From Botryllus schlosseri (Eukaryota): a stretch of 64,000 nucleotides of DNA. The stretch is from positions 20,584,001 to 20,648,000 of the forward strand of contig CM119380.1 in assembly GCA_051294905.1 (NCBI GenBank). The letters are read 5' to 3'. The notes beneath the pieces were generated by a model. That model was not told the DNA's origin, made no database searches, and worked only from the letters and a program-made list of their open reading frames with translations. The position numbers were made by a program, and so were the translations under genes. Below are positions 12,203-62,671 of this stretch, piece after piece (the stretch's first letter is position 1; each line of letters starts with the position of its first letter).

Positions 12203-13214
12203 ATGTTGATGCCTAAAGGCCATTTAGTGGCCATATACCAATCGCTGTTCGAAGACGGGGTTTGCGTAGCGCACAAATCCACTCGCGGTAACCACGAGAC
12301 TATCACGATAAACGGAGGACCTATTCCGAACCTGCACGTTGTCAAAGCGATGCAGTCTCTAGTATCGAAAGGGATTGTGAAGCAAACATTTTGCTGGAGA
12401 CATTATTACTGGACTCTGACCGATTCCGGGATTCAATACGTGAGAGAGTATCTGAATTTACCTCCTGAAGTGGTCCCGAGCACTTTGAGGCGAGGAGTTA
12501 AACCACGAGCAGGAATGGGGCGAGGTAGGGTACAGTCGGCGCAGAGTACCTCTGCAGCAGGCGACGGCAGAAATGTGTACAGATCAAAGACAGAACCCGC
12601 TAGACCCGCGTATGGCCGTGGCCGGGATAAGATCGCAGAGGCCGGTGCCGGCCCCAACGCCACGTTCGGATTCAGTCCACGCGAACCGACCATGGAATTT
12701 CGCGGCGGATACCGGAAGAATGACAAGCGAGAGCAAAGCGCGCCGAATGGATACGACCCATCGTACAATGGATCGTGGAGGCGTGTAGACAAAGCCAGCG
12801 AAGCGTCTAATAAGGTAGTTACCGAGAGAGGGGCCGTCAATAGAACCCAGTTCAATCAAGTCAGCAGCAAGGATTCAACTGCAGATAACCAGAACGAATA
12901 TACTGCTCAATTTAGCCGTTCGGAAACTCTGTTATCAGGACAAGGGGTAGCGGCGACTGTAGTGCAGCACCGCGAGGTTCACACTTCCGTCACTGAGACA
13001 CGAGAACGTTATGTAAAGCATACGGAATCGCTACAATTTTCGAGTCCGCGCGAAGAGGAAAATTCCGGTCAGGGATCGGAGAATCACAGGTGGGATAAAG
13101 AAGAGAACGAGGAGGAGGACGAGGAGGACATGGATAGATGGAGGTCCAGGAGGGCGGCTTCCGAAAATCCGGATTTCGAGCACGGCTTCGAATCGAAAAT
13201 AGACGAGGGCAGAG
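12203..13214 (+). CDS. PLEC: Alternative first exon with plectin/S10 (RPS10-like) domain; plectin isoform-1 type
   Basis: [63 protein letters not shown]; donor AGAG|gttaag, phase 1, joins exon 2 to give [11 protein letters not shown]. Confidence 0.85.
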
Positions 13215-16200: not shown

Positions 16201-19200
16201 GACAATCCAAATATTCATTTGAACGGCTGCTCGTGCTCTGTATTTCACGAGTTCAAGCGGCAAAGTATCTTCCGCAATCTATGCGTCTTCTTTTCTTCTT
16301 ATTCTGTTCTCGTCTCTTCTGAAGCCACGGGAGGGAAACTACATGGATCAAATGAGATTGGTGAGTTGTGTGATGATTTTTTGGCGAAAGTTGTGAACCT
16401 CTTCTGATATATTATGGCCATCCTTTCTTCTTTTTCTACTTTTTCTTCTGTTGTTACATTGTTGATTTTAGTGAATGATTATAATAACAAATTGATTGAT
16501 TGAATGATTGATATATGTGAGAATCGGTCTGTTATTATTCAAATTTATATTATTTCATTACTGAGCTTAATTTATAATGGTCTATGTCTTTGTTTAGCCA
16601 CGCGAAAAGGGCCGAATGAGATTTCACCGACTCCAAAACGTGCAGATTGCCTTGGATTTTCTAAAAAAGCGAAAGGTACGTTTTCATGCTTACAGATTGT
16701 TCAGAATAACGATAGTAATTATATTTTTGTTGCACAACGAGGGTTGTAAATGGAGATAGCCACTCTAATTCCTTTTAAATAAATATGGCATGTAAATGTG
16801 CTCATGAAACTGAAAGGTGTGAAGTCTTATCTTACGCTGTCAACACTGCCGATGTATTTGCTTGATTCTTTCGTAAACACTTAACACGTCAGATTAGGTT
16901 TAAACTAACTTAGTTTGGCCAACATCATCTATTGAATGGATTGTAATGTTGCTATGCACTTTGTTCACCTCGTTTAATACTTTGATTGTAGTGGTTAAAC
17001 AAGGGAATACAATAAAATTATAATAATCAATGAAAAATATCAGGGTCATTGCTCATAATTACCGCATAAAGTATCTTAGTCGGCACAGTCGCACCTTACT
17101 CTCTACGTTCTACAATCTTGGCATAATTTCTCAGGTTTGATGGGTCTTATCTCTGTGTATTTGTTTAACGCGTATTTTCTGCCTTTAGTTGAAGCTTGTG
17201 AACATCAGAAACGATGACATCACAGATGGTAATCCAAAGCTCACTCTGGGTTTGATTTGGTCCATCATCCTCCATTTCCAGGTGATTGCCTACGCTAATT
17301 GTGAACTGTAGAAACATACCTTAACTCCATGTAGATTTTTTGTTTATGTCTTGTTAATTCAGATCGAGGACATAGCCGTTGAAGGTGGAGAAGATGTGTC
17401 CGCCAAGCAGGCGCTCTTGCTCTGGGCACAACGAAATATGGAAGGTTACGACATCAAAATGACTAATTTCACATCCTGCTGGAGAGATGGCAAAGCCTTC
17501 AATGCTATCATACATAGAAATCGGTAAGTGTGATATTCCTATATTAGAACTCGCCTACTTCAACGCTGATTTTTACTACCCTTTCATTGTGGTTTTTCCT
17601 CTCTCAAGATTTTAATCATCCGCTTGAAACTTGATAGAATCAGGTGATATGTATGATAACAATGCGTGCTTATTACAGTCCGGAACTTGTGGATATGGAC
17701 AAAGTTCGTAAATCGGACAATCGAACCAACCTGGAAGACGCGTTCTCCATTGCGGAAAAAGAGCTTGGCGTAACCCGCCTGCTTGATCCAGAGGGTAAAA
17801 AACTTTTTTGTGCGAACCCATGTTTTGTTACCATGTGATAAGTTGTTGAACACGTATTTCATTACATTATCTTATGAATAAAACTCTCAGTAGAAGTCCA
17901 TTCTTGGTAATGTTTATGCAATGTGCTTGCCGGCTTTTGACCACTACTTGCCCTTTTGTGTGTTCCTAGAATGTAGGGTCTGCGGTTGATTCACGTTCCA
18001 ATGGCCATTGTATGGTCAACGGAACGTCACAATGCTTGATGCGGTTCATAGAATTTCCTCATTTCAGATGTTGATGTTGAGAAACCCGACGAGCGTTCAT
18101 TGATTACGTACGTGTCGTCGGTGTACGACGCCTTCCCGAAAGTTCCGCCTTTCCCGATATCGATTACAGTTGAGGTAATGGTAGCATTTGATTCACATAC
18201 GGTCAATTGAATTTTTCGTGAAACTTGCTGACCGGCCATTTGTTAGTCCATGTGCTAATTGTGGTACAACAAATGGTTGAGAGATTAGTAATCGTTTGCA
18301 TTGTAATGACTTACGAATGCTGACTGCTGAGTCATATTTGAAGCGAATATGATGAGTGAAATAAATCGGAATAATTCGGGTTTATATGAATATGAACCTA
18401 TTATTTAATTGTATATTGAAGTTCTGTGCCCCTAAAATTCTATTCAAATACGCCAAGTAGGATTAAATTTGTGTGGTCTTACTTCATCTATCCGTGAAAT
18501 TTTGCACCCGTCAACTAATCGCATATGGCTTCAATGAATTAGGAATGAATTGAATGAAATGATACGGACAACTGCTGATAACTCCATCCCATATGATCAT
18601 AGTTCATAATCTCCACTCGTAAGTTATTAAAGCCATCCATGCCAGCTGGCCAGGCGCAGACTGCTAATTTCCCCATTTGGATTTTTGAGCCCAGTCCAGG
18701 CTAATGATGCAATGCAAAATCGTTGAATTAATAATCTATTTAAAAAATATCCATTTCGGTTAGGATGTCTGTATGCCTCAGAGATGCTCTCTCAACTCAC
18801 AAGTTACTAAAATGTATGTAAACCAAATGCATATGAAATGACAAATTTCAACATACTGTGATGCTGCAATTCATGAATATTCCGCGCCGTCGAATCGTTG
18901 TACTAGTATTTTTCAAAATAATTCTGATTGCGGTTACTAACAACTATATACGCTGGATGCGGGTGAAAAATGTCAATATTTGGATTTTTGCGGATACTAC
19001 GATGTTTGGAATATCTGTGTGCCTCATGGATGCGGTGTCATCTTTGAATCTATACCTAACCTAAACTAATCTATACCTCATAATTGCCTCTCTAACTTAG
19101 GAATGGCAGTACTCGTGGGAGGAATACCGCATCCTGGTCACATCCATCATGCAATGGATACAGAAGCAAATCGTGATACTGCGCAAACGCGACGACATTC

Positions 19201-25200: not shown

Positions 25201-28200
25201 CAGGCGCTATGCAGTTATAAGCAGACAGAGGTGAGCAATGCGCAATGTTGTATGCAACTGTTAAAGATTTCGTACAATTGCGGTATTTAGTTGTATTAAG
25301 GTTAAGCAAGCGTTTTCATATTTTGTGTCGAATTACGATTTTGTACAATTGCGGTATTTGGTTGTATTAAGGTTAAGCAAGCGTTTTCATATTTTGTGTC
25401 GAATTGACATGTGCAATGCCCTACCTAGCACAGGCTACTAGTTACTTGACCCAGTGTGTCGCGCATAAAGCCATAACAGCACAATATCACACCTATCAAA
25501 GAAATACATGGAGTTCTTGCCATATTATGTGTACGAAATAGCACTGCATGAAGTAATATCCAATATCAATGCAGATGCATTGACAAATAGTATAATATCT
25601 CTTACGATTTTTACATTCCAAACTTTATTTATTCATAACTTTCTACCCTTTATAAACGTCTTTATTCTTGTGACATCGAATTTACCTTCTCGTTCAGCTG
25701 GCAATAGCTAAAGGCGAAGAATGCAGACTGATGCACAAGCCCAAGCCCACGGTATGGACCGTGGTGAATTCGGTCGACCAAAAAGGCGACGCACCATCGG
25801 TGCTGTTCAATATCCCGCCGCCGAGCCCGAAATCCATCGATAGGGCCGAGGCGTTGCAGAGGGATTACGCCGATCTGGTCGATTTATGGAAAGATAATCA
25901 CGACCAGGCCAAGCTCATTATATACATCATCACACTGCAGAAGAGAATAAACGCGGTCATGTCGTGGAACATCGAATCCGTGAGTACAGAGGGTTGAAAG
26001 CTTGTGATGTGTTATATGCATTGGTAATAGAGTAGGTGTTGAAGTAGTTATCATTGGTACTAAAGAAGAAGTACTCGAACAAATATATACTTGACTAGAA
26101 GTAGAAGTAGTGATTGCTAAGGAAGTAAAAAAGTAAGTATTGAAGGCCTAGTTTTGCCTACAAAACTGAAAACTCGAGTAGACGTGGTCAAAGCAGACAT
26201 CATTTGTGCTGAAGTAGAAGTGTGACGTAAATTTTTACTCAAGTACAAAAAACAAGTAGTGATTTCCAAGTAAGTAAAAATGTGAGTATTCTGGGCCTAG
26301 TTTTGCGTGGAAATCTGAAAACTGTAATGTAGAAGTAGTCAACGTGGTCAAAGTAGTCATTGACGTTCGAGTAGAAGTAGAAGTAACATGAATTCTACTC
26401 AGTCGGTCTACAAGTAGAAGCAGTCATTTCCTAATAAGTAGCAAGTAAGTATCTTAGACTTGTGCCTGAAAACTGAAGTAAAAATAGTCAAAAATTATTT
26501 TCACTCCAAGTCCTGCGGGTGCAAGAAAAATCTACTTGAGTGCTTCGAAAAGTAGAAATACTTTGTTAGTGACCGCTTCTGATTGTTATAATGTGTTGAC
26601 AGTACCGGCTTATGTCACCCGCCGAGCGGAACAACGCGTTGAAAGAATTGAAAGACGGCCTGCGGTCTGTTGAAGAAATTCAAACGGACGATCCCAACCT
26701 GACAGTGAGAAAGGCAGCGCTCCGTAGCGACGTAGACAAGTGTATCAAACATGCTGATCATCTGGCGAAACAACTGGATAAAGGTAGGTTCTCATTGACT
26801 AGCAGCGAGCAATTTGTTTATTATTGCGTTGTGTTATTGTGTTGCGTTATTGCGTTGTGTTATTGCGTTGTGTACTGTCAGGTGATCAAGACGAGGAAAA
26901 ATGTAGAACCTACATTTCTCGGTTAAACGTCATCTTGCGAAGACTGAATACTATTGACGGCGTTGTCACCGTGCGTGTGAAGACGGCCCTGCCCAGGGAA
27001 GTCTCCAGCGTGCAACATGTTATCAATGATCATGAGGTAGGCATTTCGTGTCGCATGGTGTATCAAGAGTTATGAGCAATTAAGAAAAGGGCGGTAAAGG
27101 ACTTGGGATATACCAATTCCCACAAACATTATTACAAGTATTGTGATAGTGATAGAAAGTGTTTTTTTTCGGGCTATACTGTAATCTGTGAAAGACAGAT
27201 CCCGGAGATGTAAGACCAGAATTTCCTAGACCTGTTTTTGGTACCCATATTCGGCATTTGAGCATGCGGCGTTATAACTACAATTAGAATCCTAACGCTA
27301 TCATTGACCCAAATGCACCCATAAACCTAACTGTAATCCACGTTCTCGTGTCGCATTCCAAAATGTCGCATGCACATAATATGTCCACTGACCATGGAAA
27401 TGAAGGGTCTTGCTGTCGGCACAACTGAATCTAACTTTCATTTACGACCACCGTACTGATATTCAAGCGGGCTAATGTCTCCGTACACAAGAGCCACTCT
27501 ATGCCAGTGTTGGGATGACTCGAGTCATGACTTGACTCGAATCAGACTTGAGTCACCTTTTTCGTATGACTTGACTTGACTCGAGTCACTTTGCTAAAAT
27601 GACTTGACTTGACTTGACTCGGCGTATCAGAAATGCGATTTGACTCGTGACTCGGAGCAAAATTCACGAGTCAATTTCAAGTCATCAAGTAATCGGTGTC
27701 GATAAAAATCACTGTATCTTGCATATGTTCGGATTGTTCACGAAACGCTGGTGTAACCCTTGAAAGCGACCAATCATTCAATGATCGAGCGTTTCACAGA
27801 GCCTCGATTGTTCTCTCATAAATAAATTGATCGCAAACGAAGTGATCGAAGCTTACAGTTACGTTGTCGTAAACTCTAGTAGTAAAGTCATAAAATAGAA
27901 AAATGTCTATGTCTATTCTCTGTTCTTACCTTTACCGAACCTCTTGTTTTATTGAAATTGAATTCGAATATAGTGTATATTGTCCTCAACCATTATCGCA
28001 AGCTTGAATTTTATCATATCTATGTGTAAATGAGTGATGTATTGCATCTTATCAATTCGTTTCGCTATTCTCTATTGTGGCTGGTAACTATATAAACTAA
28101 GGCTATGCAATTACTTACGTAGATTAACAGTTCTACGTGTATGTGAGCGATACAGCGCCTTCTTGTCGGTATATTTCACTCTATATTCGTTCATTGGTTC

Positions 28201-31200
28201 GGAATCAATGATCACTCAATCCGTATTTCAGACAGCTAGCAAATTGCAATGACGTAATCATGCCTCATACTTCGAAAAGGCAACTTGACTTGAAATGTGA
28301 CTTGACTCGTGACTTGACTTGACTTGACTCGACTTGACTCGAGCCACCTCCAAAAATCGAGTGACTTGACTTGACTCGAGTCACCTTTGAAAATCGATTG
28401 ACTTGACTTGACTCGAGTCAAAATGTGCAATGACTCGGAATGACTCGTGACTCGAAGGTAGTGACTTGATCCCAACACTGCTCTATGCTATTTTATCATT
28501 TGCGTCGTCCGAATTATTGGTGATTTGATCTCCGTAGAGCGCCGTGGTCGAGCTGAAAACCATCGAGCCGCAGTACGCTGAGACTCGTGACGGCTCGAAA
28601 ATGATTTTGGAAGATAAGGATTGCACGGCACCTTCTAAGGACGAACTCGGTCAGCAGCTCGAAACCGTTGAAAAGAAATGGGACCGGACCTTGAGCGTTT
28701 CCACGCTTTATTTCGATAAGTATGTTGAGATTGTTGAAAATGTTTAGTTTGTGAGTTTGTGTTATTCTCTTTCAAGTTAACTTGTATGCTTGTGTTGTCA
28801 ACAATGACAAAAAACTTTTGTTGAATTTCGCAGGTTGAAGGTGGTTTACTTGGTTTTGCAATCCACGAGAGCGGCAGAAGACGTACTGTCATATGTCGAA
28901 TCGAAAATCGAGGAGAACAAGGATATTCCAGACGATTCTGAAAGTTTGAAGAAACAGCAAGCCGTATTCCAGGTATTGCGGAAAATCTTTGGTGTCATGG
29001 TGCTAAATTGCACAGCAGTGCTATGTATCAATTTGAAACTCTATTGATTACACAATATTGTACCAACTGTGTCATATTAGCAATTGAATTAGGTTGTGAC
29101 ACTACTACGACCTGTAAAAACAGTCTATAAAATGAGAATTCTAGGCATATGCGTCTCCCAGCACTGTACTGCTGTAGTACGGTGATGCGATCATGATATT
29201 GCAAAGCTTGATATACTGCCTTTGTTTCATGTTTCTCTTGTAATACAGAATTACTGCGCTCAGACCAATGTAAGTATCGTACTGAGATAACGTGCGAACA
29301 CCATCATATCATTTCATAGGGTGTGACTATTTTAGTGATTGTGAATGGTGCTTATGGTTCTGTTATAAATAACCGGTGTCATGAATTTCACATTGCATTC
29401 GTCATCTATACTTTAGCCATAAACCATACCCCTTTTTTGTAATGAATTATTCAGATGTGACAATGTTATGATATAGTGATTGTTTTCTTCATATTATATC
29501 CTATGATCATTTCAAAGTGCTATGGATAATTGATAATGCTCATTATGATTGCCTGCATTATGCAATAAGCCGTCTTACATATTAGGTTGGATTTTGTCCT
29601 ATCTCAACCATAGAGTAAATGCAAGCCATTGACGTATAACCTCATTTATCCAACAGTTTTCTTTTCAAGTACAAAAGAGCCATGATTTGAAAAAATAAGT
29701 TTAATATATTCCTCAGATTTGTTATTATATCGACACAGCATTGATAGCAATCCTCCAGTCCAAAACTTGAGAAATATGTTTATGTGTCATATCTCATGCA
29801 TTAATACTAGTAGAATTTGAAAAGAAACATTCTAATAAAAGCTTAGATGTCTCTGCAACTGATAACATCGCTAATAAATATGAACAGCGATAGAAATCCG
29901 GGGGTATTCCAAGTTTATGGTTGTACTGATATGGTATGGCTATACAGATGCTCAAAATCCTGACACAGGTGTCACAGTACTCTTAAAAATCAATATTAGC
30001 ATGGATCTGTTTGAAACATGAACATATAACTCATCGAATGCCGCATCTAAACCCCGACTCCTCTCCGACAATTGGTGGCATGTTCACTAAAACCACCGTT
30101 TGCTGTCATAAAAATGATTTGCGTCAACTAGGGCCTGCGAGACACGCTGGAAGAAAAGGAACCCGTGGTCACCAGCTTGCAAAGGGACGCGGCACAAGCA
30201 AAAGAATTGGGTGCAAGGGTGGTTAAAGTGGCTGATACTCCAGAATCTCCGGTTACCGAAGATGTGGACGCTGCCAAATACACGGATGATGTCCAATCGA
30301 TCGTGGAAAGATGGCAGCTCAGCAAATCAGCTGTGGACGAGAGGTAAAGGCTGATTTTAGAGTTCGAATAGATAGAGTGAAAAAAGCCTCTTTAGGAAGT
30401 TGATTAATAAAAACTTAGGCCAGCAACTTCACAACTCCCAGAAAAGGCAAACAGCTCCCGGGCCCCAAACTATTGGTGCAGACATATTCATTGATATTCT
30501 ATTTGGAATTTTGTGTGATCTAAGTTTCTACATGATAGGGCCAATGGGGCAACATAACTGCACAATAAGAAAGAATTCAATAACCTCGGTACCATCTATG
30601 GTTGATCAAGTCAAATATTTAGTGTTTTAAATCAACTTACTGTCAGTCTTGTGTACGGTACCTGTTGTTAGTAAAGTCTAACATCTCAAAGTATATGTTG
30701 TATGCATCCGATCAAGTAAAATACTTGAACACTCGGCAATAAAAATGCTTTACAATGATAAGAAATGGATGAAAATGGATGAAACTCACAACTGTACAAT
30801 GTACATGTAGACAATTATATCACCATGCTTACTGTCCAAAAATATTTTCCAGACTCGCGAAATTCAATGAGCTGTTGCCCAGAGCGGAACAAAGTAAGTC
30901 ATAATTTTCTTTTTACAAGAATAACTCGATACTTACTGACTCCTTTTGCAGGCGAGGCCGAAGAACAACGGGCCCAATCACTTATCGACCGTCTCAAGAA
31001 GTTTCTGGAAACACTGGAGGGTATTGAGTCAAGCCAGCACGCTCAAATGGCCGTTTGGCTACGCAGGTCCGTCCCGGCTTTGGAGCAAGCCAAGGAGAGT
31101 CAGTCTGTGAGTGCTAATATAAGGTACGCTGTTCGATACGTTGAAGCTGACATTTTCTCTATTCAGGACGTCGTGAAACGCGTCAACAGTCTCAAGCCGG

Positions 31201-34200
31201 AGTATGACTCCCTACAATCCGTGGTTGTTAATTTTCTCAACGATGAAGCCACCGGTGCCGCGCCCAACTTGGGATCACTGCGCGACACATTGCATGAAGT
31301 GCAACAGAAATGGACTGATTTATGGCTTATCACGCACGTGTACCTCGAAAAGTATGCCCGAGATTACGGGTTGCCGAAACTTTCTCGGATTACAATTTAT
31401 TTATGCGTTTAGGATCACGGGATTGGTGTACACGCAAACCGCGCTTAACGAATGCGAGAAGACGGTGAACGAGTATGAAAAAATCATCGCGGACCGGTCG
31501 CATCCTACTTCGGATGTCGACACTTTGAGAATTCGAAATGAAGTGTTTCAGGTGGGACTGATTTTCACCCAGAATCTAATGGTTTTCTTTTGAAATTTGC
31601 AAATGTCAAATCAGTATCAGTAAGAAAAACATTTATCATTCACTGTTAATGTAGGGTTACCATAATTTGGAAATCTAAAAGAGCTTCTTGGAGGTACAGA
31701 ACTTCAATATACAATTAAATAGTATATTCATATTGAAATGAACCCGAATATTTTCGGCTGACACTCGTCAGGGGTAATCGTCAGCAACTAGTAGAGAATT
31801 GGAAAGAACATTGTATATCAACAATCGTATCACAAAATATGACGTCACCAGCATGAAATTTCGAATGAGAGAGCGTTCAATGTACTATTTTTAGGTGATA
31901 CACGAACTCCTTTTGTTGACAGAGTTTTGGTTGGTGTATTTTGATAAAAGTTGATTCCAAGGCACACAAATGGAATTGTGAACGGCCTCGACCTACGATT
32001 CGAAATCGGTCGTCTCGATAATTATTCGCACAAATCGATTTGTGCGAATAATTATCGAGACGACCGATTTCGAATCGTAGGTCGAGGCCGTTCACAATTC
32101 CATTTGTGTGCCTTGGAATCAACTTTTATCAAAATACACCAACCAAAACTCTGTCAACAAAAGGAGTTCGTGTATCACCTAAAAATAGTACATTGAACGC
32201 TCTCTCATTCGAAATTTCATGCTGGTGACGTCATATTTTGTGATACGATTGTTGATATACAATGTTCTTTCCAATTCTCTACTAGTTGCTGACGATTACC
32301 CCTGACGAGTGTCAGCCGAAAATATTCGGGTTCATTTCAATATGAATATACTATTTAATTGGAAATCTAAAAAGAGGACACTTTCTCAAAATTTTCAGAC
32401 TTGCGAAACCGGAGGAGAATTCTCAAAAATTGGTAAATTTTACCCCCTCAGTGGTCGGTTGACTAAAGAAAGTAAAAAAGTAAAAAATAGGTCAACTTTC
32501 TGCTCAGTGCTCCCGAAATACCCGCCAGAGCGTCACTTTGGTGCTGATATACGGCATCTCAGTCGGATTTTGCTATGTATATGACCAAAATTCTCAAAAG
32601 AGGACAAAATCTCAAAAAATCGGATATAAGGGCTTCCTCCGAGGACACTTTCAAAAAAGTCAAAAAAGAGGACAAATCCTCTTAAAAGAGGACGTATGGT
32701 AACCCTATGTTAATGCAAACACTGAGTACTCGTACAGATAGCGACTGTGTAATAATGCTTAGCAGCCCCTCAGTCGTTACAAAATCTGTACCAGATTCTC
32801 ATAGATGTGATTTATCCGTCTATCTAAATGTATAATTTAAAAAATTCCTGTCGACATATTACGGGTGTCATTGCATTATTCCTTTTAGGATTCATTGCTG
32901 TCTGGTTTATAATAATCTTGGATTTTATTGCGAACCATTGTAAAACCTGCAGTTATCCGTGTTGAAGCTTTTTGTGAATTTACTGACTTGGTGCACTTCA
33001 TACCGGATGCTACTATTCCTCAATAATCCCTGGGCAAACTGTTTCTCTCTTTAATTTGGTGACGTAAACTTTTTCGTTCCAACAGAGACTCGTCGGAGAC
33101 ATTCCTGTGCATGACGGGAATTTCGACTCGCTGGCCAAAAACTTGAATTCGACTTGCAACGTCGCCGGGCAACTTCCCAAGGAACTGGGCGAGAAATGCA
33201 ATTCGGATCTGGACGTGTACGCACAAGAGATTGAAGAATTGCAAAAGCGTTGGGACGACGTCAAGGCCAAACTGAACCAACTTGCCATAGATGTTGCCGC
33301 GCAACTGCCGTTGTTGGAAAAAGGTGATTACATTTACATTCATAGTTCTAAATTAACGGTGGAGCGTCAGGCTTCTGTGGCTGTGGGTTCAATCCCCGGG
33401 CGGTAAGATCGAAGACCAAATCAGTGAAACTGATATTACATTGCGCTCAGCATTTTCGGGTTAGCATCGAGGTGAGGTACAAGACTTAGAATGCCTTGTA
33501 AGGTTATTTCTGCACCTTCCTTGTTCACTGGCCACTGGAATGAATATGCACAAATCGTGTGTATGTGTATCATGAGTTCAAGTATATGCCGCAAAAACGC
33601 CAAAGGATAAAAATATAAAGCATTCTATTTCTTCTATTCTATCTTAACGGTCCTCAGACTTGAAAATCTAATTCACGATGAATTATTGACTCTAACCAGG
33701 GGTTCTTAGTCTATCATTGACCCCTAAATAAATGCAGCGTTTGCGTTGAATATTTCTGTCACCGTGAAATGGTGTGGCAATCAGCTACACACAACTTTGG
33801 AAATTCTGTTTCCACTACCAAATTAAGTAGCAATTGAGGTGAAGATGGTTCAAATGAGGTGGTTCATTGCTGAACACCGTTGAGCCGCACTATTCCAAAC
33901 ATGTAGGATATAAAGTCGACGCACATATCCAAATTCCATATTTGCGACAGTACCTTATACCTACTCCAATATTTTAGCGGCCGCCCAAGAAAAGGAATTA
34001 TCCGACCTACTGGCTAGAGTCAAAGCAATGCTGTCAGGGCTTGAATCGCTCGCGCAAGCGCAGAGTGCTCGTATGCAAGTCGGCTTACCAGCTGAGTCAA
34101 AGGGCTTGGAAAAATGCCTTGAACAACAAAAGGTATGTTGTAGATAAAAATTGCATTAGTCAAATGCTGTAGCCCTCATCAAATTGATTTTTTATTCAGG

Positions 34201-37200
34201 ACGTGCAAAATAAACTGGCCGGGCTCTCTTCTGAGTATTCTTCGCTGATGGATGACGTTAACAAGGCTTTAGCACAAGACGATTTAGTCGCACCCACTGC
34301 CGATGCGGTCAGAGACGAGTCGGAAAAATTGGCGCAAAAGTGGAACGAACTCAACGAATCCACCGCGTTGTTCTACGCCAAGTAATCTACCATTGTGAAC
34401 GGTTTTGGGCTTGATTTAATGTAATTTTCTCCAGGATCAAAGTTCTGCGCGACCTGTCTGAACTTATGTCTGACGCTGTTAGCGTCGTGAACCGATACGA
34501 ACAGACTTTGGACGCAAACGAACACTTCCCCGAGAACGATTTGATGGCGTTGAAAAAACAGCAGGCTGTGTTGAAGGTCGGTATTGGACATGACGGGATA
34601 GTTTCCACCGTTTTTGTGGTTTAATTACGCTCAATCCCATACGATAGCTTGCGACAGATGTCGTCAAATTAGTCATCGTTGGTAAAAGTTAAAAGTAGTA
34701 GCAGTGATTCGAAAAGCTTCTTGGAGGTACAAAACATTGAAATTATTACTTGAATAGTATTTTTTTAAAGAAATCTGTTCTGTGAAGAATTCCAGTCGTT
34801 ACCTTACACATGGTATGAATAATTATCATTTGTACAACGAAAGATACTTTCCTGCATTCTCGGGTAGAAAGTGTCTGTCCTTACTAAGTTGTTTGCCAGG
34901 AATGGAGAAAGTTCGTTCAACAGCAGCAGTTATTGGCTGGCAACACATAACTTGTGCGTACGCGGCTGGTGACACACCGTGTAGCTTCATTCTGACAATG
35001 TTGTCCACATCACAATTTTTCATCATACGCTTCTTGATTTAAGAATCAAGTTCGGATATTGCGGTACGTTTAGCATAACACCATGTCAACCTATTTGTTT
35101 CATTTGACCGTTTATGATTCACAATGAAGCAGACAATGGGCCGTCTACAACGGTAGGCCTATAAAGTAGGCTACAAGCGGTAAAATGTCAAATGATAAGT
35201 TCAACGACAGTGCAAACATCTACGGTACAAACGAATGCAGGTTGCAAAAAATTTTGAAATTGTCAACAAATTTTTGACCTAAAGTTACAATTTAGACAAA
35301 AATTTTACTAATTTTGACATGTCAAAAAAAATCGCCCTACTGTACACCGATGCTTGCAGATGCCCAAAACTTAACTAAGTTTTCGACACGTCTAAAACTA
35401 TAGCTTTCCCGATGCGTCTTTCTGGAATTGTGGCTAATGCGAAAATAATCGCTTTTCACCCAGGCCTTAGCTGATGACATCCCAGCCAACGACAAAAAGT
35501 TTGAAGACGTTTCGGAAACGCTAGAGATCGCCGATGCGACTGCTAAGAGATTGTCCGAACAATCCGGCGTGCCAGAGCAAGACGTTCCTCAGAGAGATAA
35601 CGAATGCAAAGACGCCGACAAGCGTTGGGACGACGTGAAAAAGAGGCTTGGCAAGAGGCTTGATGATCTGGCGGAAAGAATTCCGGTCGTGGAGAAAAGT
35701 AAGTGGCAGCCATAAAAGTTATTTCATACGTGACCAAAGTACTCGGCTTTGCTACTCAATTGAAAGTAGAAGTAACGCCATGAATTTTTATGCAGTTATA
35801 AGCAGATGAAGCAATTTCCGACACTTGTTTAGACTACTTTTCAAGTCAAAGTAGACATTGGAAAGTACTCAAGTAATTAGTTTTACAAGGTCGAGGGTTC
35901 GCATACCTTGTCAGTTCATCGGAAGTGGCAACTTTTGAAATTGCAAGTGGCGTGATGGTGCGTCGCGCAAGATGGCTAGACAGTACAAATAGGTGCAAAT
36001 GCATTCGGCGGTTATTGTGATGGCCATTTACCACATCTTTTATGACGCTTTCACACATGAAAATGATGCATGCGAGTTACGTTCTACTTTTCACAATCTT
36101 AAACTGTATGAAGTATGTAATTTTTCTAGAACCCCGTTCCATTTTTTCTAGTCCGGTGATAATTTACCGTTAATTTTGTGTTCTCTTCTTTATCATTGTC
36201 TCCCATCACTTCAGTGGCTTCCGAAGAGCAAACCGCAGCCACCTTGCTGCCGGCCGTCGAAGATATGATCCACGAATTGGAATGTTTGGAAAGCGCACAA
36301 GCTGTGCGTGCTGATGTGTCGCTACCGACCGAAGCCAACGCCGTGTCGCGTGTACTCCAACAACAGCAGGTAACGTGTTTTGATCGGCTACAGTCTTTGT
36401 CGGTTTTGGAGGGGGAGTGCTTCCAAGGCTCTACATGGTACTTGGTTTGAGTTAACTGAAACAGCCAAAGGTAGGTGAAGTACTCAGCGTTGATACTCAA
36501 GTAGAAGTAATACCATAAATATCTACTCAAGTTTAATTAGACGTAGTCGTACATAAGACCTATCAAAACTAGTGGTGAAAGTTAAAAAATGAAGGTCTGT
36601 GAAGTATTAAGTCAGTATGTTCAAAACAGTAGATTTGGCCGAGGAGTCACATGCTTATAACAGTCAATCGGGGTTGACTTTTTCCAATACCGCATAGTGC
36701 ATCTTAGCGACTAACGCAAACTGACTGACTAATGACGCTACAAATAAGTGCAATTTTCGAAAATATACCAAGTTATCGTGATACAGGGGCGATTTCGCCT
36801 CTCTATTATGACAGTTTCACCCTTAAAACTGATGCAAGCATTCTCAAACTACCTTTTACATTAAAAAAAAAAACTGTAAAAAGAAAGGAGTTTTGCATCA
36901 AAAACTGGTATCTAGAAGTACTTCATTACTGAAACTGACCACCTCTGGAAATAGCTCCTCTGTTTAAATCTAGAGCTTCCAACTTTATCGAACGACATTG
37001 GCTGATTACTATTTTAAAACTTTCAGGAGACCAAAGATCGCTTCCAAGACGACGTGACACCTCGCTACGGGGTGATTTTATCGCAATGTCGGCCCGTGGT
37101 GGAATCGGATGATTCCACGGCGCCGTCCATGGCAAAACTGGCGGCCGCCGTTGATAAAATGGAAGACAAATACGACTCGGTGGACAAGATGATCGACAAC

Positions 37201-40200
37201 TATTTGAAGAAGTAGGCTTGCGGCTGTCTTCCTTGGATGAAACAGTGTGCTCACTCTTGCCATGGTTGCTTACCGTTTAGAGTCAAGCGTGTGCGAGAAT
37301 TGTTGGATCTACTCAGCAAGGTGAAGCCTGTGTTGAAGAAATACGAGAACGAAGTAGCCAAAGCGAAAGTCGATGAAGACACGCCTTTGGCGAAATTGAA
37401 GGAGTCGCATCAAACCCTGACGGTTGGTTGAGTCTGGTAGTTTGAGACAAATATTTTCAGTCCTGAAATCATATACCTCTTTCATCCATCACCAATGAGA
37501 ATTATAGTTTTATCAATGTTTTTCTAACTGTGGTGGCCTTGTAACCTCGATGAGTCGTAACACAGCATTCAAAACATGGCACAAAGTTACATTCAGTAAG
37601 TGGAAATGATATTTCTGCGAAGTCTTGATCAACCTGCAGCATTGGCAGCCCTTGTTATGAGCTATTGAGCAACTGTGATGAAATGAATGTTGTGAAAGAC
37701 ATGCGCTATCATAAATCAAATAGCACATCCACAACCACAGCCCTATACACCACAATGTATTGATGATGTAACTGACTTGTCTTGTTTTCCGTGATATTTT
37801 GCCACAATGCGCTTCTTGGTAAAGGCTTTTAATGTTGGTAATTATCCAAATTTACCACATGTTTAGCAATTATTACTAATTTCAAATGACGCTGTAGGCG
37901 GATCAAAATTTCAAGACGTGAGTGATAAGATGTCTCATACCAAATAATGAAGCAAATATAATTGTTATGAAAATTCAGGTTTTTCAAAATTTCCTTTCGT
38001 TTCAGGCCTTGAAGGCAGGCGTCCCTGCGGAGGACCCGAAATTCGACGCTGTCACGCAAGCTTTGAAGGCGGCCTTAAATGAAGTGGAAATGCCTGACCA
38101 AGACATGGAGTATTGCAAACAGGACGCGGAAGATGTCACCGACAGATGGGAAAAAGTCAAAGCCGAGCTAGATAGCAGTCTGAGAGAGGTCGAAGATCTC
38201 ATCCCCAACGCAGAGAAAGGTCTGTGTCGCTGTTTGACTCTGAGGGTCTATTTTACGAATGCCTGTTCGATATCTCTTATTTCAGCTGCTGCTACAGAGG
38301 CTGAGTGCCGCACCCTGTTGCCTTCTCTCAAAGAGTTGATCTCGGAATTGGATGCGCTTGAGCACGCGACTCGGGCTAGAATTGGCATGTCGATGCCTGC
38401 CGACGCGGCCAGTGTGGATAAGGCGATTGCTCAACAAAAGGTGACCTGCATTCAATCGCTAGTGAAAATCTTGATGGCATGCACATTGCACAAATTATCG
38501 CATATATTCACATTTCATATTCAAATTTTAGCATAATAGAGCTTGGGAGCTGAACCCGATACCGATATTGTCGATATATCCTATTTTTGATGTGACACTC
38601 TTCCAGAACTTCTAATTAGCGGCAGTAACAAGAGAATATATCCCATATAAACTCCATTAAATTATAATTGCATTCAAGCTGAGTAAAAAACTAGTACTTC
38701 CAGTGGTAAATGTATGCTTGTACTTCAAAGAACACAAATTTTCAGCATGTTTCGCTGAAGTCCTTATAAATCAATGATCTGACGCCACTTAAGGCCCGTT
38801 CATTAGAAACAATTGTGGCAGTGATGACGTCATTACACACGTTAAGTAGTATCGTCCGGAGTTGGCCGGTATCAATATTTCTACGCTGAGATATACTTGG
38901 GAGTTTAAAAACATCATGTTTCGATGCACCGTTGCCTGGAAAATTCCAGACCTAAAATCTTTGAAATGACGCTCCACGCCTAATGTAGAGCAATCTCTAC
39001 TAACACCCTGTTTTTGAAATTTCACAATACTCCAGTATTCCTATCCGCAAGATTCTTAACATAGCCACGGCGATACGAAAATATTGAACCCTATTCAGGA
39101 CACCGCCAAGAAGCTGGATGCCCGCGAGCCCACTTACAAGGAACTGCAGGAGCGTGTTCAAGACGTCTTGAAGTCTGTCACAGAGGACACGCCCTTGACA
39201 GAGCAACTGCGTAAAGACCAAGACACCGCCGATAAGAAGTGGAAGACCGTATCCGACCTCTGCAAGCTCTACCTAGAAAAGTATGTAGCTTGTGGTGCTC
39301 ACTTGAAATGTAGCTCCAAATTACAACCTGTTTAAAAATCGCAGACTTGACGCCCTTCGCGATGCTGCGGAAACAGCAAAGACAGCTGGCGATACAGTTA
39401 GAGCCTACGAAAGTCAACTGGTTACTCTGGACACCATGTCGGGTGATGTGCCGGGTCTCAAAGAACAGGTTGATATGTTGAAGGTAAGTGTTCGTAATCT
39501 ACTTTGTATGCATTGTATCTACATCTGTTGACGAATTTACGTAGAAACTGGATGAGGAAATACCGCGTCACGAGCCTGAGTTTGAAAAACTCTCGGACGC
39601 CGTGGATAGAGTCAAAGACCGCGGTGATAGTTTGAGTAAGGAAAGCGGCATGGAGGACTTAGAGACGCCCCAATGCGAAGAGAACGCGAGCGATCTCAAA
39701 AACAGATGGAACGAAGCGAAAGATCAAGTCAAGAAAAGGTGGGTCGGTTCTCGAGTATAACTTGTTCCACGGCTTACAAGCTCCGTGCGCCGTATAGATT
39801 GGATTACGCCAGCGATGGTCTTGACAAATTGAATGAATACGAAGAAGTGGCCGGCAGACAGAACGATGTTATCGACGGCGCCGAAAAGAAACTGGCTGAC
39901 GAAGACATGAGTAAAGTCAAGACCGATTCGGACGATATCAAAAAGCAGATTGAAGATCACGAGGTATTCCGTTTTTGAGCGCTGGCCGTTAGAGTTAAGC
40001 CGTGTAACGTGTTTTTGACCGCTTGCACTTATACCTGAAGAGTTTTTGCTGTTCACGAATCGGATTTTGAAACGTAGAAAGCTGTTTTAGCGTAAGTTTC
40101 CCACACTTTTATGTTGTAAAACCGCGCGAAGTAGTCCCTGGAATATACATATTTGAATTTTGCACGTAGTTTAGTGTTGGTGGTCGTTTTGCGTTAGTTC

Positions 40201-43200
40201 ATAAGAGATATATTGCGATTTTGCAAGTGGCCGCCTCTGATGAATTGCAAAAAGTATGCGTCTCCTGTACCGAATCTACTTCTTGAACTACTATGTCGGG
40301 CAATTGTGAAACCTTTCGCTTTTTACTTCCACTTGAAGTAGTTTTAACGTGATTTTGAAATATCTGCTGGTAGTAGGAATTGAAATTTGCGACAATGTCT
40401 CTACTTCTCTCTGATTAGCACACTGACTGCCTTGACAACCTCTGAGCATCGATTATACTTTGTAGAAAATCGGGAAAGATTTGGACGAAGACAAGCCAAA
40501 TATCGATAAGCTGGCCGCGATCGCGAAAGAATTCGACGAAACCGCGAAGCAGTACGACGACACTGCAGATAAGTTCGAACCGGGTGATGCCACTCTTGCG
40601 TCTAAGAAGAAGGGAGGAAAAACAACCATCACACGCATTATCACTGTTGAGGTGCGGGGATTGTTGGTGTTACCCCGTTTTTGTGGCGTTACTTGCCGTT
40701 TTGAGCACCTCCTAGTTTTGCCAATTAAGCTATTGAAGAGATTATAACTTTACACTGACATCACTTTCGCAAAATGTATTTTAAGGCGAAATTATTTACT
40801 TTCATACGTGTTGGATTTTGGAAAGTGTGAAGTTTTTTTTTTTTAAAGGCTTGCATCACGTTTGCCACTGAAATAATCATGACAACCGAATGAACTAGCC
40901 CCCGTGTCATTGGAACTGAATATTTACTCAGAAAGTGCACTAATTTGCAATGTCTGCTTTGTGTTGGCCGCAATGGTTCATTGTTCAATTCGAATGTAGT
41001 CACCTCCGATTAACTACTTTTAAAGCACTTACTTTAGTACCTTGAGACCATTCACTTTGTATTTCTACTTGTAATTAAGTAGAAATTTACAGTATTACTC
41101 CCACTTCTACCTACTTAGTATCAATGCTGAATACTTTGTTTACCTCTGTTAGTAGTGTGGGATGCCCATTGTTCGACAGTGTGCAGAACGCACCAGCGCT
41201 TTGTACTGGTATTAATCAATTGTGTTTTACATATTTTTTTAATTGTCACGGCAGGTGACGACCATCACGCGCAAGTACGATAAGTTGAAGAACTTAATTT
41301 CCGAGAGAGTGGACCAGTACACCATCGAGTACGACAAGGCCAAAGATAGAGAGGTGACGATTTCTCGCATATCTACATACGTAGACTTAGCTCAAAAACT
41401 GATCTGCTGTAGTTTAGGCCACAGGTGTATTATAGTACTTCATATTGGTTGACATCGTGTCGCCTGTTAGCATTATCATTCTAAAATTCTCGATAGTTAA
41501 TGAACGTATTACCGTGTTAATTTGACATCATTAAGCTCGGTATATATGCCTGCAACGTAGACACCATGGTAGGCGTAGAATATAGCTAAAATTTCTTTAT
41601 TATATGAGTGCCTTCACAGCCATTTTTGATGCATTGCCTTGTTTAACGCGCATGCGCGTCACGCGAAAAGGTTTAGATTGGACAGGGGCGCCGTGTTGGA
41701 TTATACAGAAGCCGTTGATCGTGCAGTTCAATCTAATCGCATGTCCGATGCACACGCGAATTCGCTGTGGCGTACGTTTATATGTTGCGTTACTGTGTAT
41801 GTATGTATGCCGACGGTCCCCGTGAATAGTAACCAGCTACTGCGTGTTACTTGTCACAATGCACTCCGGCGGAAGTGCAATCAGGGTCATCCCGGACTCG
41901 AGTCCAAGTCGCACTTATAGTATGCATGGCTTTGCGTTGCTGTTTTCCTGTCGAGCTGTGCGTTGCTGTGCGGAGAATCATGCTGGGAGACGGGTGACGC
42001 AATTGGAATGCTGCGCGTAATTCCGGTGTATCTTCAATTCTCTCTTATTTGCACCCTTTACTAATACTGCTCGTTTTTATATCGCGCGCATAGTACGTCT
42101 GATAATAATTCGACTGGTGTATTGACGGGATGAGTAAAACCGGAGTTGGACACCAAGGAATTTTTAAGCGTTTTCAAATTAGAATAGAATTAGAATTATA
42201 GTAACACATTTTTTTTTAATTTGATTTAAATTCGCATTAATGAATTCACAGAAACTTGGAGATTAAATCGGATATCGAATTAGGGAGAAATACAACAAAA
42301 ATGATATCAAGTCATGAGTCCATTCTTGTAAGCACGAGAATTCGCAAATGTGTGTACAACAAGCTTGCCTCGTTTGACACGACACAGATCTCCTATGGCA
42401 TTTTCGGTAAAATGATAAATGAGACTCGAATCAAAATTTGATCATAGAAACATATCAAAATTAAATTATTGAAGTCTTAAAATTCGGAAATTGAATTGAA
42501 GAAATACAGCAAAATCAAGCTCAGTGCATATATAGTCAGAGTTCATACTCATATCCGAATGGCAAATGTCTGTGCAACAAGCTTGGCACGTTTCGCACAG
42601 CACATTTATCCTGTGACATTTTCGCTATTACCCGAATTTAGAATCGAATTGAAATTAGAGCTTGGAAACATTTCACAAATTAGATTAGAATTAGATTACC
42701 CGCATTTCGAATCAATTAGTCTGATTCGGCAACTAGGATGATCTATTTGTTCAAGTCTGATTAAAACGACATGTTTTGAGGAGTATCAATTCCGTTGGTA
42801 AGAAGTGTGAAATGACCGGGACGAATTATTATCAGAACCTTTCCACCGCGGTATACCCGCCGGGCGTGATGCTGCTGCTCGCTTTAATTGCTTGCCTTTG
42901 TATATCCACCTGCACGTTTTGATATACCTTGAGCTATGTGTCGAGTCGTGGGACACGAGGAGTATATGCGTTAGGATTTTGCGCGCGTGCCGGCTGCAGA
43001 TAGGTACTACCGCGTCCGTGGCTCTTGCGGTGTTATGTTTGGTATGGCGAGACGGTTGGAATGCGGCGTTTTCGAGGACTTTGGTGAGATTCATGCTTAT
43101 TGGTGAGTAACCGTTAACAGTTTTGTGTTTTTATCTTGCGTCTTCTGCTGCTGCCTGATCTTTTTCTGTCCGAACTCTTGTCGCGTGTGTCCTTGGCGTG

Positions 43201-46200
43201 TGGCTTTTGCGCGATTGCTTTTGGGCCTGTGTTGGTTAGGTTGGATTTGATAGCCGCGCTGACATCATGAGCAGTCTGGTTTGAATCGTATAACATAGTT
43301 AAGCCGCTAATGTAAACCAACACGGAATTCACTAGTGCGCAGATTGGAAAGGTCAATCATAATGGGAGAACATAATTTGATTTGCATTCTATAGTTCAAT
43401 ATTCGAAATTTTTCGTTTGGCATCATATACGTGATCGCAAAATTCTGCGTGAAGCGTCCGATTTGCCTTTAATTTGACGTATTGTTAGGGCTATTTCACG
43501 ATGAATAATGAATATCAACGAACCAACAATTACGTGTCGAATCGCTAGGTCCTGGTCATCGAGTGTAATTTGACTATTCTTGAATCAGTATGATAGATGA
43601 CAACTTAGTAGGTGTACTGTGTGTAGGGTATCTAATCGCTAAATCTATTTTCCTGCAATGCTCCGAGCGCTGTAGATTGTTACCTACATTTCAGCTGCAC
43701 TCTTATCTGTTATCGTCTCTTAATTTTTCATGGTACCTCAATTTTTCATTGTCTCCACTTTATGACACTGCGTAATTTATCGCGGTTCAAGACCATCACA
43801 CTATTTCGCAATCACATTTTAATGACTTGGTGCTCATTTGTAGCATTTGCGACAAAATGCGATCGTAGCAGATTGCCTAACAATCATTCATGCATTACAA
43901 CTATTCTTTCTACTAATACCACTGAGCTATCTATATATCTACGTAGTTCAGTGACTAATACCGGTACTTTGCTGTAATTTGTGGCGTAGACACTGATTTC
44001 TTGTAGACGGGTGTCAACCACGAGATGAATTTGGTGATACCGCTTTTGTGTCCGAGACTGATTTGAAATCGTTCTCGTAACGTACTGGTGATCTTCTACT
44101 CCGATTCATGACTTCACTGTGTCAATGCGCCTCATCCAATACTGCCGAGGCGGCCCGTTTTCCGGCAGAAATGGAGATCGAGAAAAGCGAAATTTATTCT
44201 AGCTTCGTAGATTTGCATTGGTGTAGAACTAACGCACGCCACGGTGGCCGTGATTTCCCCTCTCCTGAATATGTGGTGGCTTATCCGAACCAAGTCAACC
44301 CTCGTACAGAATCTATAGTCGTTGCGTTGGTTTCTGTTACCTATCGCGGTTCAGCGACAAAATCTGCCCTCGGCATCGCCAAACGAAGGCACACATCTCG
44401 TGGTCGATGGCCCTCGATTGATAGTCGGGTTCAATGCATGGTGATTGAACTTTCGTAAACTTCACGTCAGTGGATGCGCGCTTTCATATTAGAGTGTTTT
44501 CGTGAATCATGCATGCGCACAATTGAAGACTTTAGACCGGGATTAAAACAGATGTCGCACTTCTTAAGTTTCGAACCGTGACACAGGCTGACCGCGCCTT
44601 TTGCTGTGTCACTTGTTGTATAATAAGTTGTAACCTATCAGCGTGTGGAACATAACTGGTTTGTGATGATTTTCACACTTCGCTACAAGTCTAAGCCGTT
44701 CGGTAATTGCTATTTCAATGCCGCGCATCGCGTCAATAGAAGCCTCGCTGCGATGTCCTTTCTTCTGGTTTTAACTGTGAAGTTGGCGTAGATATGCTTA
44801 CGCAGCCGAGAGAAGTGTCATTTTCTCTTTTGCTGTCTTGAATGGCGGGCGCCGTAATATCGTGCGTAACCGCGTAATTGTCCGTGTAAATAATGTCAGG
44901 GTTATGATACTGCCGGGTGTTTGATATGGACGATTCGGACGGAGACGGGTCGGTTTTTAGCGCGTCTAGTCTGTGCTGCTGCTGCTGCCTTACCACCGAT
45001 TTAGTAGCCGGGTGGAAGCGAAGAAAATTGAGGAACAGGCGACTGAAATTGGTAAATTAACAGGCTAATAACAGGCTTCAATCGTAACCTTGACCAGATT
45101 AATTCAAGTGAAGGCGTGGATGGATGAGGCGCTATTGACTTTTTTCTCGATTTCTCTCGTTTGCGTGCGCTCATTGTTATTATTACGTCACTCACTGTGA
45201 CGTCACAACGGTTCCACAGGAAGCGGCGAGGCGCGCGGAGGAAGAGAAGAACGCGAAAACCACGACTATCACGGAGATTACCACCACCACGACTACTGTT
45301 AAAAAGAAATCCAGGCGGGACATCTATTTCCTGACTTCCTTCAGGAAGGAAGCTAGTCTGCTCGACTTGCAAGATGCGGGAATTGTTACCGAGGAAACTG
45401 CCCAGCAATTGGAATGTGACGCCATTCCTAAGGACGAGGTAAACATCACCGTTTCCCGCTGAATTTTATTTAACCACACGATTTAAGTTCAATTACGTCC
45501 GATTACCTTTGTTCTACCACGTTAATGCTGGTATTACCAAGAAATAGACAATCGTCTTTTATTAATGTACATTGGATGCAGGTATAGGTAGTAGGTAATT
45601 AGGTATACTGAGCAAAATACCTTTACTATGTTCTGTGTGGTCGCTAGTTTCATACACAATCGCCCATGTTAAAGTACTGCCATAGTTAATCTACACATCG
45701 AGATATCCTTATAAATGTCTGTTTGAGGTGCTTTTTAACCCATACGATAGGTAGATATTCTAATAATCAATATACTGATGTAATCATAGTGAATTTTAGT
45801 GACATTGCTCATGATATTTAGGTTGAACAAAGCCTGAAACGATATTTGTCAGGGGACCAACCAATATCTGGTGTTATCATACAAAAGGCGGACAACAAGG
45901 TCATGTCTGTCAACGAAGCGATGATCCGTGGTATTATCATGGCAGGAACAGGGTAAGTCTCGTGTTACCCTATCATTATCCTATTCTTGGGGTGCCGAAA
46001 TGTTGATGCAGGTGTTTTTGAGTTGACTCGCTCTATTGACTTCTGAGCATATGTGTATGATATTTTAAGAGACTCAGGTTGTATGTGGTATTTATTTTGA
46101 ATTGCGTTTGGAGATCATATTCAAGTACTTTAAAAATCAATTTTTATTGTGTTTAGAAATACGTTTGTGTGTTCAGGCTTGGTTTGCTGGAAGCGCAAGC

Positions 46201-61859: not shown

Positions 61860-62092
61860 GACAAATATGCGGCCCTCCAAGGGCAGCTGGATGCTGACAC
61901 AGAAGCATTGTGTCTCCACGAAGAAGCGCTGGAAGCTGTTGCCGGGCCCGATGATTTTCTGAATGACATCCCAACTCTGAAGAAATTGGTCGATGAGCAA
62001 AGGTCGCTCGTAAGTGACATTGCAGAATCGACTCCCCGCATCGAAAAGACGTGCAACGATGTAGATCAGTTTCTGGATGCTACTAACGACAG
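61860..62092 (+). CDS. Spectrin-repeat exon downstream of the plectin stop codon (spectraplakin-type branch; continues beyond window)
   Basis: ttag|GAC...AG|gtaagg, phase 0 to 2; DKYAALQGQLDADTEALCLHEEALEAVAGPDDFLNDIPTLKKLVDEQRSLVSDIAESTPRIEKTCNDVDQFLDATNDR shows a spectrin-like heptad pattern. Confidence 0.75.
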
Positions 62093-62671
62093 GTAAGGAG
62101 CGTGGAGCACTGGTGTTGGGGGGACTTATCCTTTGAAAAGTAGTAGCGAAAACTTGTGCCATGCGTCTCCATGACAATGAAGTAATATAGGCGCATACGT
62201 ATTGAGACTAAATATATCAATCAGCATAGATTCAAGTCATATATAAAGCAGGCATGTCAAACATATGGCCCGGATCAGTATTGACTATGTGCAAACCACA
62301 AGTCGCTACCGAATGTCTATCTAAGCTCTAAATGAAAATACACCAAATCCCTAATATTTCATGACTCTGTATAGAGCAGCAATTGATACAGATGCTCCCA
62401 TGCTAATTACTAACAGGTCAGCGATAATCTTACCTCTTCAATGCAATCATCATTAATGGCAAGCTTTTCATGTCACACCAGCACTGGGATTTCCAAAATC
62501 ATAACGAGACTCATAAAGGAGAAATATGCTATGACGTGCAATGATAATGCAAGATTGGGGGAAAATGTGGAATAGTCTGTGCTCACAAATTGAATAATCT
62601 GGTTTCACATTAAGAGACATCGTATATAGTTGATATTCGAAAGAGCCTATATTTTTCATTTCTATGCATAA

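Follow-up and report, generated by a model that had tools for sequence, protein, structure and literature searches.

The window analysed here is the whole stretch of 64,000 nucleotides at positions 20,584,001 to 20,648,000 of contig CM119380.1 of Botryllus schlosseri (assembly GCA_051294905.1). It carries part of a plakin/spectraplakin gene in which a cassette of four exons, matching the spectrin repeats (SR) SR7 and SR8 of the plakin domain, recurs five times in tandem. From cnidarians to humans, plakin domains have been described as a conserved rod with no more than nine spectrin repeats. The sequence of the window is eukaryotic, without long open reading frames and with numerous short open stretches on the + strand, and the exons of the array were rebuilt from the sequence by splice sites and frame.

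The tandem exon cassette and its transcripts

The array lies at 26882-39738 on the + strand and consists of five tandem cassettes of the exons A, B, C and D. The chain comprises 21 exons read in one unbroken frame of ~1190 codons, all of them bounded by canonical splice sites, i.e., an AG acceptor behind a pyrimidine tract and a GT donor. Exon A measures 155 nt in each of the five modules, exon B 182, 185, 182, 185 and 182 nt (modules 1 to 5), exon C 139, 139, 142, 142 and 139 nt, and exon D 253, 238, 235, 214 and 194 nt. The 253 nt of D1 are interrupted by an extra intron, absent from the other modules, which leaves parts of 212 and 41 nt (30132-30343 and 30853-30893), and the final ~41 nt of the D exon of module 5 reside in the next exon, 39798-39963, through a fusion. 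The intron phases of the cassette are 1-0-2-0, each module begins and finishes in phase 1, and the module lengths (729, 717, 714, 696 and 711 nt) are all divisible by three. The original prediction, five copies with exons of 155, 182-185, 139-142 and ~194-253 nt, phases 1-0-2-0 and alignable peptides, is borne out by the rebuilt chain and by the alignments below. The features of the region, with the evidence for each, are as follows.

26600..26783, +, exon preceding the cassette (which we take to be the end of SR6): open frame and donor; ends in phase 1 and gives the first base of a codon that A1 completes; the start is that of the open stretch
26882..27036, +, module 1 exon A, 155 nt: canonical sites, frame
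28538..28719, +, module 1 exon B, 182 nt: canonical sites, frame
28834..28972, +, module 1 exon C, 139 nt: canonical sites, frame
30132..30343, +, module 1 exon D part 1, 212 nt: canonical sites, frame; orthologues at 91% (SRR25569784) and 77% (L024)
30853..30893, +, module 1 exon D part 2, 41 nt: restores phase 1; codes the tail motif common to D2-D4
30952..31106, +, module 2 exon A, 155 nt: canonical sites, frame
31167..31351, +, module 2 exon B, 185 nt: canonical sites, frame
31413..31551, +, module 2 exon C, 139 nt: canonical sites, frame
33086..33323, +, module 2 exon D, 238 nt: canonical sites, frame; an X10 contig with 239 nt upstream of A3 fits the D2-A3 joint
33978..34132, +, module 3 exon A, 155 nt: A3-B3 junction in X5, X8 and X10
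34200..34381, +, module 3 exon B, 182 nt: RNA junctions; orthologue at 98% in SRR25569784
34435..34576, +, module 3 exon C, 142 nt: RNA junctions
35464..35698, +, module 3 exon D, 235 nt: RNA junctions; orthologue at 82% in SRR25569784
36215..36369, +, module 4 exon A, 155 nt: D3-A4 and A4-B4 junctions
37027..37211, +, module 4 exon B, 185 nt: RNA junctions
37281..37422, +, module 4 exon C, 142 nt: RNA junctions
38006..38219, +, module 4 exon D, 214 nt: RNA junctions; orthologue at 84% in SRR25569784
38286..38440, +, module 5 exon A, 155 nt: D4-A5 junction
39099..39280, +, module 5 exon B, 182 nt: RNA junctions
39345..39483, +, module 5 exon C, 139 nt: contig junctions, plus 2 raw X23 reads
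39545..39738, +, module 5 exon D, 194 nt, ending in phase 2: junction to 39798
39798..39963, +, last ~41 nt of module 5 and start of the next, SR9-like repeat: junction from 39738; the loose end at 39963 reads into 40466; weak but collinear match to a profile of the post-module region in other chordates, independent expectation value (iE) 0.006
40466..40651, +, SR9-like exon: read continuation from 39963; canonical sites
41255..41353, +, last exon before a 3.9-kb intron and probable branch exon: canonical sites, frame
41354..45219, +, intron without a rod exon: longest + strand open stretch 125 codons
45220..45459, +, first exon of the plectin-repeat (filament-binding) region: acceptor, frame; the 3' end is that of the open stretch

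The exon at 26600..26783 was assigned to SR6 from its position after the SH3 exon and from known plectin sequence. A sixth half-module at 39798-40651 was considered and set aside, as the module profile lends it no support (iE 0.5) and it resembles the post-module (SR9) region of other chordates only marginally. Short runs rich in Thr and Ile (18 and 13 residues in two examples) recur near 40620-40651, 41255-41275 and 45260-45300, in the terminal parts of the three exons connecting the plakin domain with the plectin repeats.

RNA evidence covers 33970-39969 and comes from four runs, X5, X8 and X10 as contigs from three studies and X23 as raw reads. The contigs of X5, X8 and X10 behave as RNA, because the intron depth in them is near zero. 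All 12 GT..AG junctions predicted from A3 through D5 to 39798 are present in these contigs, i.e., A3-B3, B3-C3, C3-D3, D3-A4, A4-B4, B4-C4, C4-D4, D4-A5, A5-B5, B5-C5, C5-D5 and D5-39798, and the loose end at 39963 continues with the initial bases of the exon that starts at 40466. The consecutive junctions D3-A4 and D4-A5 establish that modules 3-5 are joined one after the other in mRNA. X23 yielded 98 reads, nearly all of them on an intronic repeat, with two junction reads among them. That repeat occupies 34800-35350 in the intron between C3 and D3; it is an interspersed element of ~530 bp with >5000 candidate copies in the genome at ~80% identity, and it shows a very high RNA depth (up to ~4900) and loose ends headed by poly(T). 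A SNORD78 match within it does not reach the gathering score (E 0.017) and probably reflects chance.

Homology and identity of the repeated unit

The five modules can be aligned over their full length with few gaps and with 19-30% pairwise identity, and BLASTP between every pair of modules is significant and in register. When each module was compared with a profile of the other four, the match ran from end to end with an expectation value (E) of 1e-29 to 1e-48 (Z = 1e5). A profile made from the five D exons finds exactly five sites in the 495-Mb genome, all at this locus, and over 140 kb of the locus no strong copy beyond the five is detected with the module profile. An artefact of assembly is ruled out, since the copies are just 19-30% identical and are transcribed.

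To which part of a plakin the modules correspond was read from the long plakins of other animals. A whole-library search with the SH3 exon returned 66 proteins, and the long ones whose names were looked up are MACF1, dystonin, plectin and an amphioxus protein, from fish, shark, turtle, snake, lizard, frog, lungfish, lamprey and amphioxus. The five-module profile finds exactly one full-length site in each of the 21 long plakins with this region (20 from vertebrates, i.e., MACF1, dystonin and plectin, including lamprey, and one from amphioxus), with E between 1e-15 and 1e-34. This site starts ~60 residues past the SH3 match, and the remaining matches of the profile are weak and all lie in spectrin rods (E 1e-5 to 1e-8). 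That other plakins have a single such unit had already been proposed, and one strong copy in 21/21 chordate plakins agrees with it. In the window, the SH3_10 exon at 25695-25817 is followed by one further exon and then by module 1 at 26882, which puts the array after SR5-SH3 and SR6.

The reciprocal comparison used a profile of 16 vertebrate and amphioxus segments that contains no ascidian sequence. Against the spliced modules it gave E 7e-38 for module 1, the best match, 4e-28 for module 5, 3e-21 for module 2, 5e-19 for module 3 and 2e-14 for module 4, with matches spanning positions 1-230 of 237 in all five, and the cassette exons were its sole matches among the 1771 open stretches of the 140-kb locus. 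The segment of lizard plectin that is matched by the modules (residues 1104-1331, E 2e-34) corresponds to the entire 234-residue chain of the structure 5J1G (1e-83) and, in 5J1I, to the initial two thirds of a chain of 373 residues. The best PDB matches of the D-exon profile are residues 162-232 of 5J1I and 5J1G, with E 2e-9 and 2e-8. We take 5J1G to be the SR7-SR8 construct of plectin and 5J1I the SR7-SR9 construct, with which the chain lengths of 234 and 373 agree. In a maximum-likelihood tree the SR7-SR8 units stand apart from rod repeat pairs (support 100/100), the vertebrate units form one clade (99/97), modules 2-5 group together (88/81), and module 1 sits with amphioxus at the base in an arrangement without resolution. 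Judged by sequence, each module is thus homologous, end to end, to the SR7-SR8 unit specifically and not to other repeats, and the label SR7-SR8 given in the original prediction was right by the reciprocal profiles, the correspondence with 5J1G and the tree.

The copies also have individual histories in related organisms. In the related sample SRR25569784, a comparison that rests on four called open reading frames, D1, B3, D3 and D4 each have a separate orthologue, at 91%, 98%, 82% and 84%; none of the four belongs to module 2 or 5, from which nothing follows. A metagenome contig from ENA (L024) carries an orthologue of D1 at 77% with both splice sites kept; its DNA similarity is restricted to the D1 exon, and the proportion of nonsynonymous differences (pN) is 0.13 against a synonymous proportion (pS) of 0.76, the latter being saturated. 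The array is therefore old and its copies are kept individually by purifying selection, because they are 19-30% alike among themselves versus 77-98% alike to their own orthologues. All five modules are coding.

The gene that carries the array

The Pfam domain SH3_10 has a single site in the whole genome, the exon 25695-25817, and therefore only one plakin-domain gene is present. The plectin structure 3PE0 is matched at E 3e-9, in keeping with a plakin domain that has an embedded SH3. Upstream, a CH domain (Pfam) lies at 17312-17524, and tblastn gives a match to MACF1 residues 30-290, so that a CH-domain actin-binding region is present. Plectin repeats follow on the same strand at 46-59 kb and 65-72 kb, and spectrin repeats and an EF-hand (Pfam) lie farther downstream, also on the same strand, with GAS2 66 kb past the end of the window. 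Shark MACF1 is collinear with the extended locus in tblastn from its residue 30 (14.4 kb) to its residue 7243 (131.2 kb), over 117 kb. Lizard plectin aligns to the actin-binding and plakin regions and to the plectin repeats, the latter with up to 79% identity, and its residues 5-146 match a head exon at 12203-12640 with 45% identity. The open frame 12203-12640 lies upstream of the CH exons; it is the S10-like head of plectin isoform 1, a plectin feature that accordingly predates the vertebrates.

The original prediction had named the gene plectin, which does not hold: a plectin of the vertebrate type ends after its plectin repeats, whereas this locus, the sole SH3_10 gene, runs on in collinearity with MACF1 through the spectrin rod, the EF-hands and GAS2. 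Its mixture of plectin-type and MACF1/dystonin-type parts is what would be expected of a single pre-duplication relative of all three, and the sequence identifies it as a spectraplakin, the single pro-orthologue of plectin, MACF1 and dystonin. That all these parts are joined in one transcript is suggested by their collinearity.

Several other features of the locus and the genome were observed. After the last plectin repeats, at 59127-60087, there is a serine-rich tail with a motif of the RRGSFD type and a stop; it resembles a plectin-type C-terminal tail and may be the end of a filament-binding isoform. A spectrin-like exon at 61860-62093, between the split plectin-repeat exons (45-59 kb) and a giant plectin-repeat exon past the end of the window, matches the module profile weakly (iE 0.03), has no Pfam hit and is probably the entry to the spectrin continuation. 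Inside the spectrin-rod part, an open frame of 639 codons (L007:6137-8053, i.e., 110137-112053 of the extended locus) has no Pfam match and could be an insert of disordered sequence or an exon used alternatively. Four more loci with plectin repeats, G000:C11:15535923-15600005, C8:4831126-4833447, C8:12992429-12992773 and C10:28242080-28243891, are without SH3_10; one of them has an open frame of 2593 codons, and they may be repeat-only genes of the epiplakin kind.

Interpretation and comparison with known systems

The reading favored here, to which we assign a probability of about 0.85, is that the genome's single plakin/spectraplakin gene, related alike to plectin, MACF1 and dystonin, carries five tandem copies of SR7-SR8. 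In the simplest history, a four-exon cassette with phase 1 at both ends would have been duplicated in tandem after the lineage split from the vertebrates and long before its split from the sampled relatives, with module 1 as the least-changed copy, nearest to the canonical unit, and modules 2-5 as a derived group. With ~17 spectrin repeats, the plakin domain would then exceed the nine that it usually has at most, and the ~950 added residues would form a helical-bundle arm of ~40 nm between the SH3-bearing core and the part that follows, be it the plectin repeats or the spectrin rod. The arm would probably bring a longer reach and more SR7-SR8 units able to unfold under force or to bind partners, and not a substitute for a dimerising rod.

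A number of points weigh against this reading or limit it. The read evidence covers 33970-39969, from module 3 to the exon behind module 5, with one X10 contig whose 239 nt upstream of A3 fit D2, and the splicing of modules 1-2 and the junction from 41353 to 45220 are predicted from splice sites and frame. The contigs are too short for a single one to span the whole array, and variants in which a module is skipped are lost from contigs when rare. Forcing the monophyly of modules 1-5 costs 0.16 log-likelihood units (approximately unbiased test, p-AU 0.47, not rejected), and the placement of module 1 leaves a single origin of the five copies compatible with the tree rather than demonstrated by it. 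A search of the whole library returned no full-length tunicate plakin, the nearest being a fragment of 137 residues. The Pfam family SR_plectin_7 (PF21097), which does match the amphioxus unit, has no match on the contiguous piece A2+intron+B2 (E<=0.01), and exon by exon it found nothing across the genome, a search that is uninformative because the control genomes were silent as well. Pfam gave no family for two contiguous module pieces, phmmer of the A2+intron+B2 piece against PDB gave no plakin, and the profile of the A exon alone gave nothing in PDB. Any mechanical consequence of the extra modules is, finally, a prediction.

A bolder proposal, which goes beyond the favored reading and which we hold to be unlikely, is that SR7-SR8 is a force-sensitive or partner-binding unit, of the kind suggested for SR8 in worm VAB-10, that was multiplied five-fold for a longer, multi-site or stepwise-extensible arm, and that splicing could tune the number of units between tissues, given the phase symmetry of the cassettes. 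If this were true, the gene would offer a natural length series of the plakin domain.

The idea behind the original prediction, that this is a plectin which has no coiled-coil rod and in which four extra SR7-SR8 modules serve as a replacement spacer in a monomeric or differently assembled linker, was examined next to the sequence between the array and the plectin repeats and is unlikely. The absence of a rod was correctly noted: 41354-45219 contains no rod exon and no + strand open stretch longer than 125 codons, helix formers make up <=0.53 of any of these stretches compared with 0.85 in a real plectin rod, and a tblastn search with the plectin rod came back empty over 264 kb. The ~950 extra residues, from four modules, also stand, and the head exon (45% to the plectin head) and the plectin repeats (up to 79%) are indeed plectin-like. 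A spectrin repeat, however, spans ~5 nm and a coiled coil 0.15 nm per residue, so that by this textbook geometry eight extra repeats amount to ~40 nm and 1100 residues of coiled coil to ~160 nm; the spacer would be about a quarter as long as the rod and not of similar size. The claim that the modules stand in place of the rod fares no better. The amphioxus plakin, with one SR7-SR8 unit, is likewise rodless (it has no 200-residue window of rod-like composition, whereas lizard plectin and a lamprey plakin have such windows), and because of this the absence of a rod is probably ancestral, with no loss to compensate. The cassette moreover lies upstream of the exon 41255-41353, beyond which both the plectin-repeat exons and the spectrin continuation are found. 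This exon is the probable branch between a filament-binding tail and the continuation into the spectrin rod, and because the cassette precedes it, any product from the actin-binding end should carry the cassette, i.e., products of both kinds, including those with the spectrin rod. The gene is, besides, the only one in the genome with a plakin domain, and its collinearity with MACF1 extends to GAS2.

It is very unlikely that the modules are alternative cassettes, with transcripts that carry a variable number of them and a usual protein that has one or few. Every module starts and ends in phase 1 with a length divisible by three, so any subset could be skipped in frame. The contigs of the three RNA runs nevertheless join D3 to A4, D4 to A5 and D5 to the next exon, no joint that skips a module was reported within 33970-39969 in the RNA-derived runs, and all copies tested are under purifying selection. 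That the modules are orthologues of different canonical repeats (SR7, SR8, SR9 or the rod) and merely alike can hardly be right: spectrin repeats share one fold and rod pairs do match the module profile weakly (E 1e-5 to 1e-8), but the SR7-SR8 profile matches each module end to end and in register, other chordates have a single such site, the exon sizes and phases recur exactly across the modules, and the alignments and the 100/100 split of the tree refute a separate origin of this kind.

What would be new, on the reading of five tandem SR7-SR8 copies, is a spectraplakin with a plakin domain of ~17 repeats built by a five-fold cassette, in which the extra repeats would serve as a longer arm and as additional unfoldable or docking units. 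A specific internal pair that is multiplied five-fold, selected and expressed shows that the plakin domain tolerates large changes in length, and the array would be a natural test of what SR7-SR8 contributes to reach, to elasticity under load and to docking sites (compare SR8 in worm mechanotransduction, below). The corrected gene identity, a single pro-orthologue, supports the coiled-coil rod of plectin as a vertebrate addition.

Our search of the literature found no report of an expanded SR7-SR8 array, and the comparison is therefore with systems that share parts of the arrangement. MACF1, dystonin, Shot of Drosophila and VAB-10 of C. elegans have the same order of CH domains, plakin domain with SH3, plectin repeats, spectrin rod, EF-hands and GAS2. 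In the worm, the single gene vab-10 gives rise to filament-binding and microtubule-binding products (PMC2199363), a likeness that is predicted here, and deletion of SR8 from VAB-10 sensitises embryos to the loss of mechanotransduction partners (bioRxiv 10.1101/681072). The plakin domain of these proteins has up to nine spectrin repeats with the SH3 in the middle (PMC9145010; bioRxiv 10.1101/681072), versus a predicted ~17 in Botryllus schlosseri, where a plectin-type, S10-like head exon is present in addition. Vertebrate plectin shares the head exon, the actin-binding domain, the plakin domain and the highly similar plectin repeats, but it has a coiled-coil rod of ~1300 residues (composition windows 1451-2800, P0021) and neither spectrin rod nor EF-hands nor GAS2, and the present gene is the reverse on each of these. 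The amphioxus protein of Branchiostoma belcheri (KAI8481242.1) likewise has SH3_10, SR_plectin_7 and plectin repeats followed by spectrin repeats (fifteen and ten stretches, respectively) with no rod-like region, and differs in having one SR7-SR8 unit, at residues 712-906. The crystallised SR7-SR8 of plectin (5J1G; SR7-SR9 in 5J1I) is collinear, as a whole two-repeat unit, with each of the modules, which are at most ~26% identical to plectin and stand five in series instead of one.

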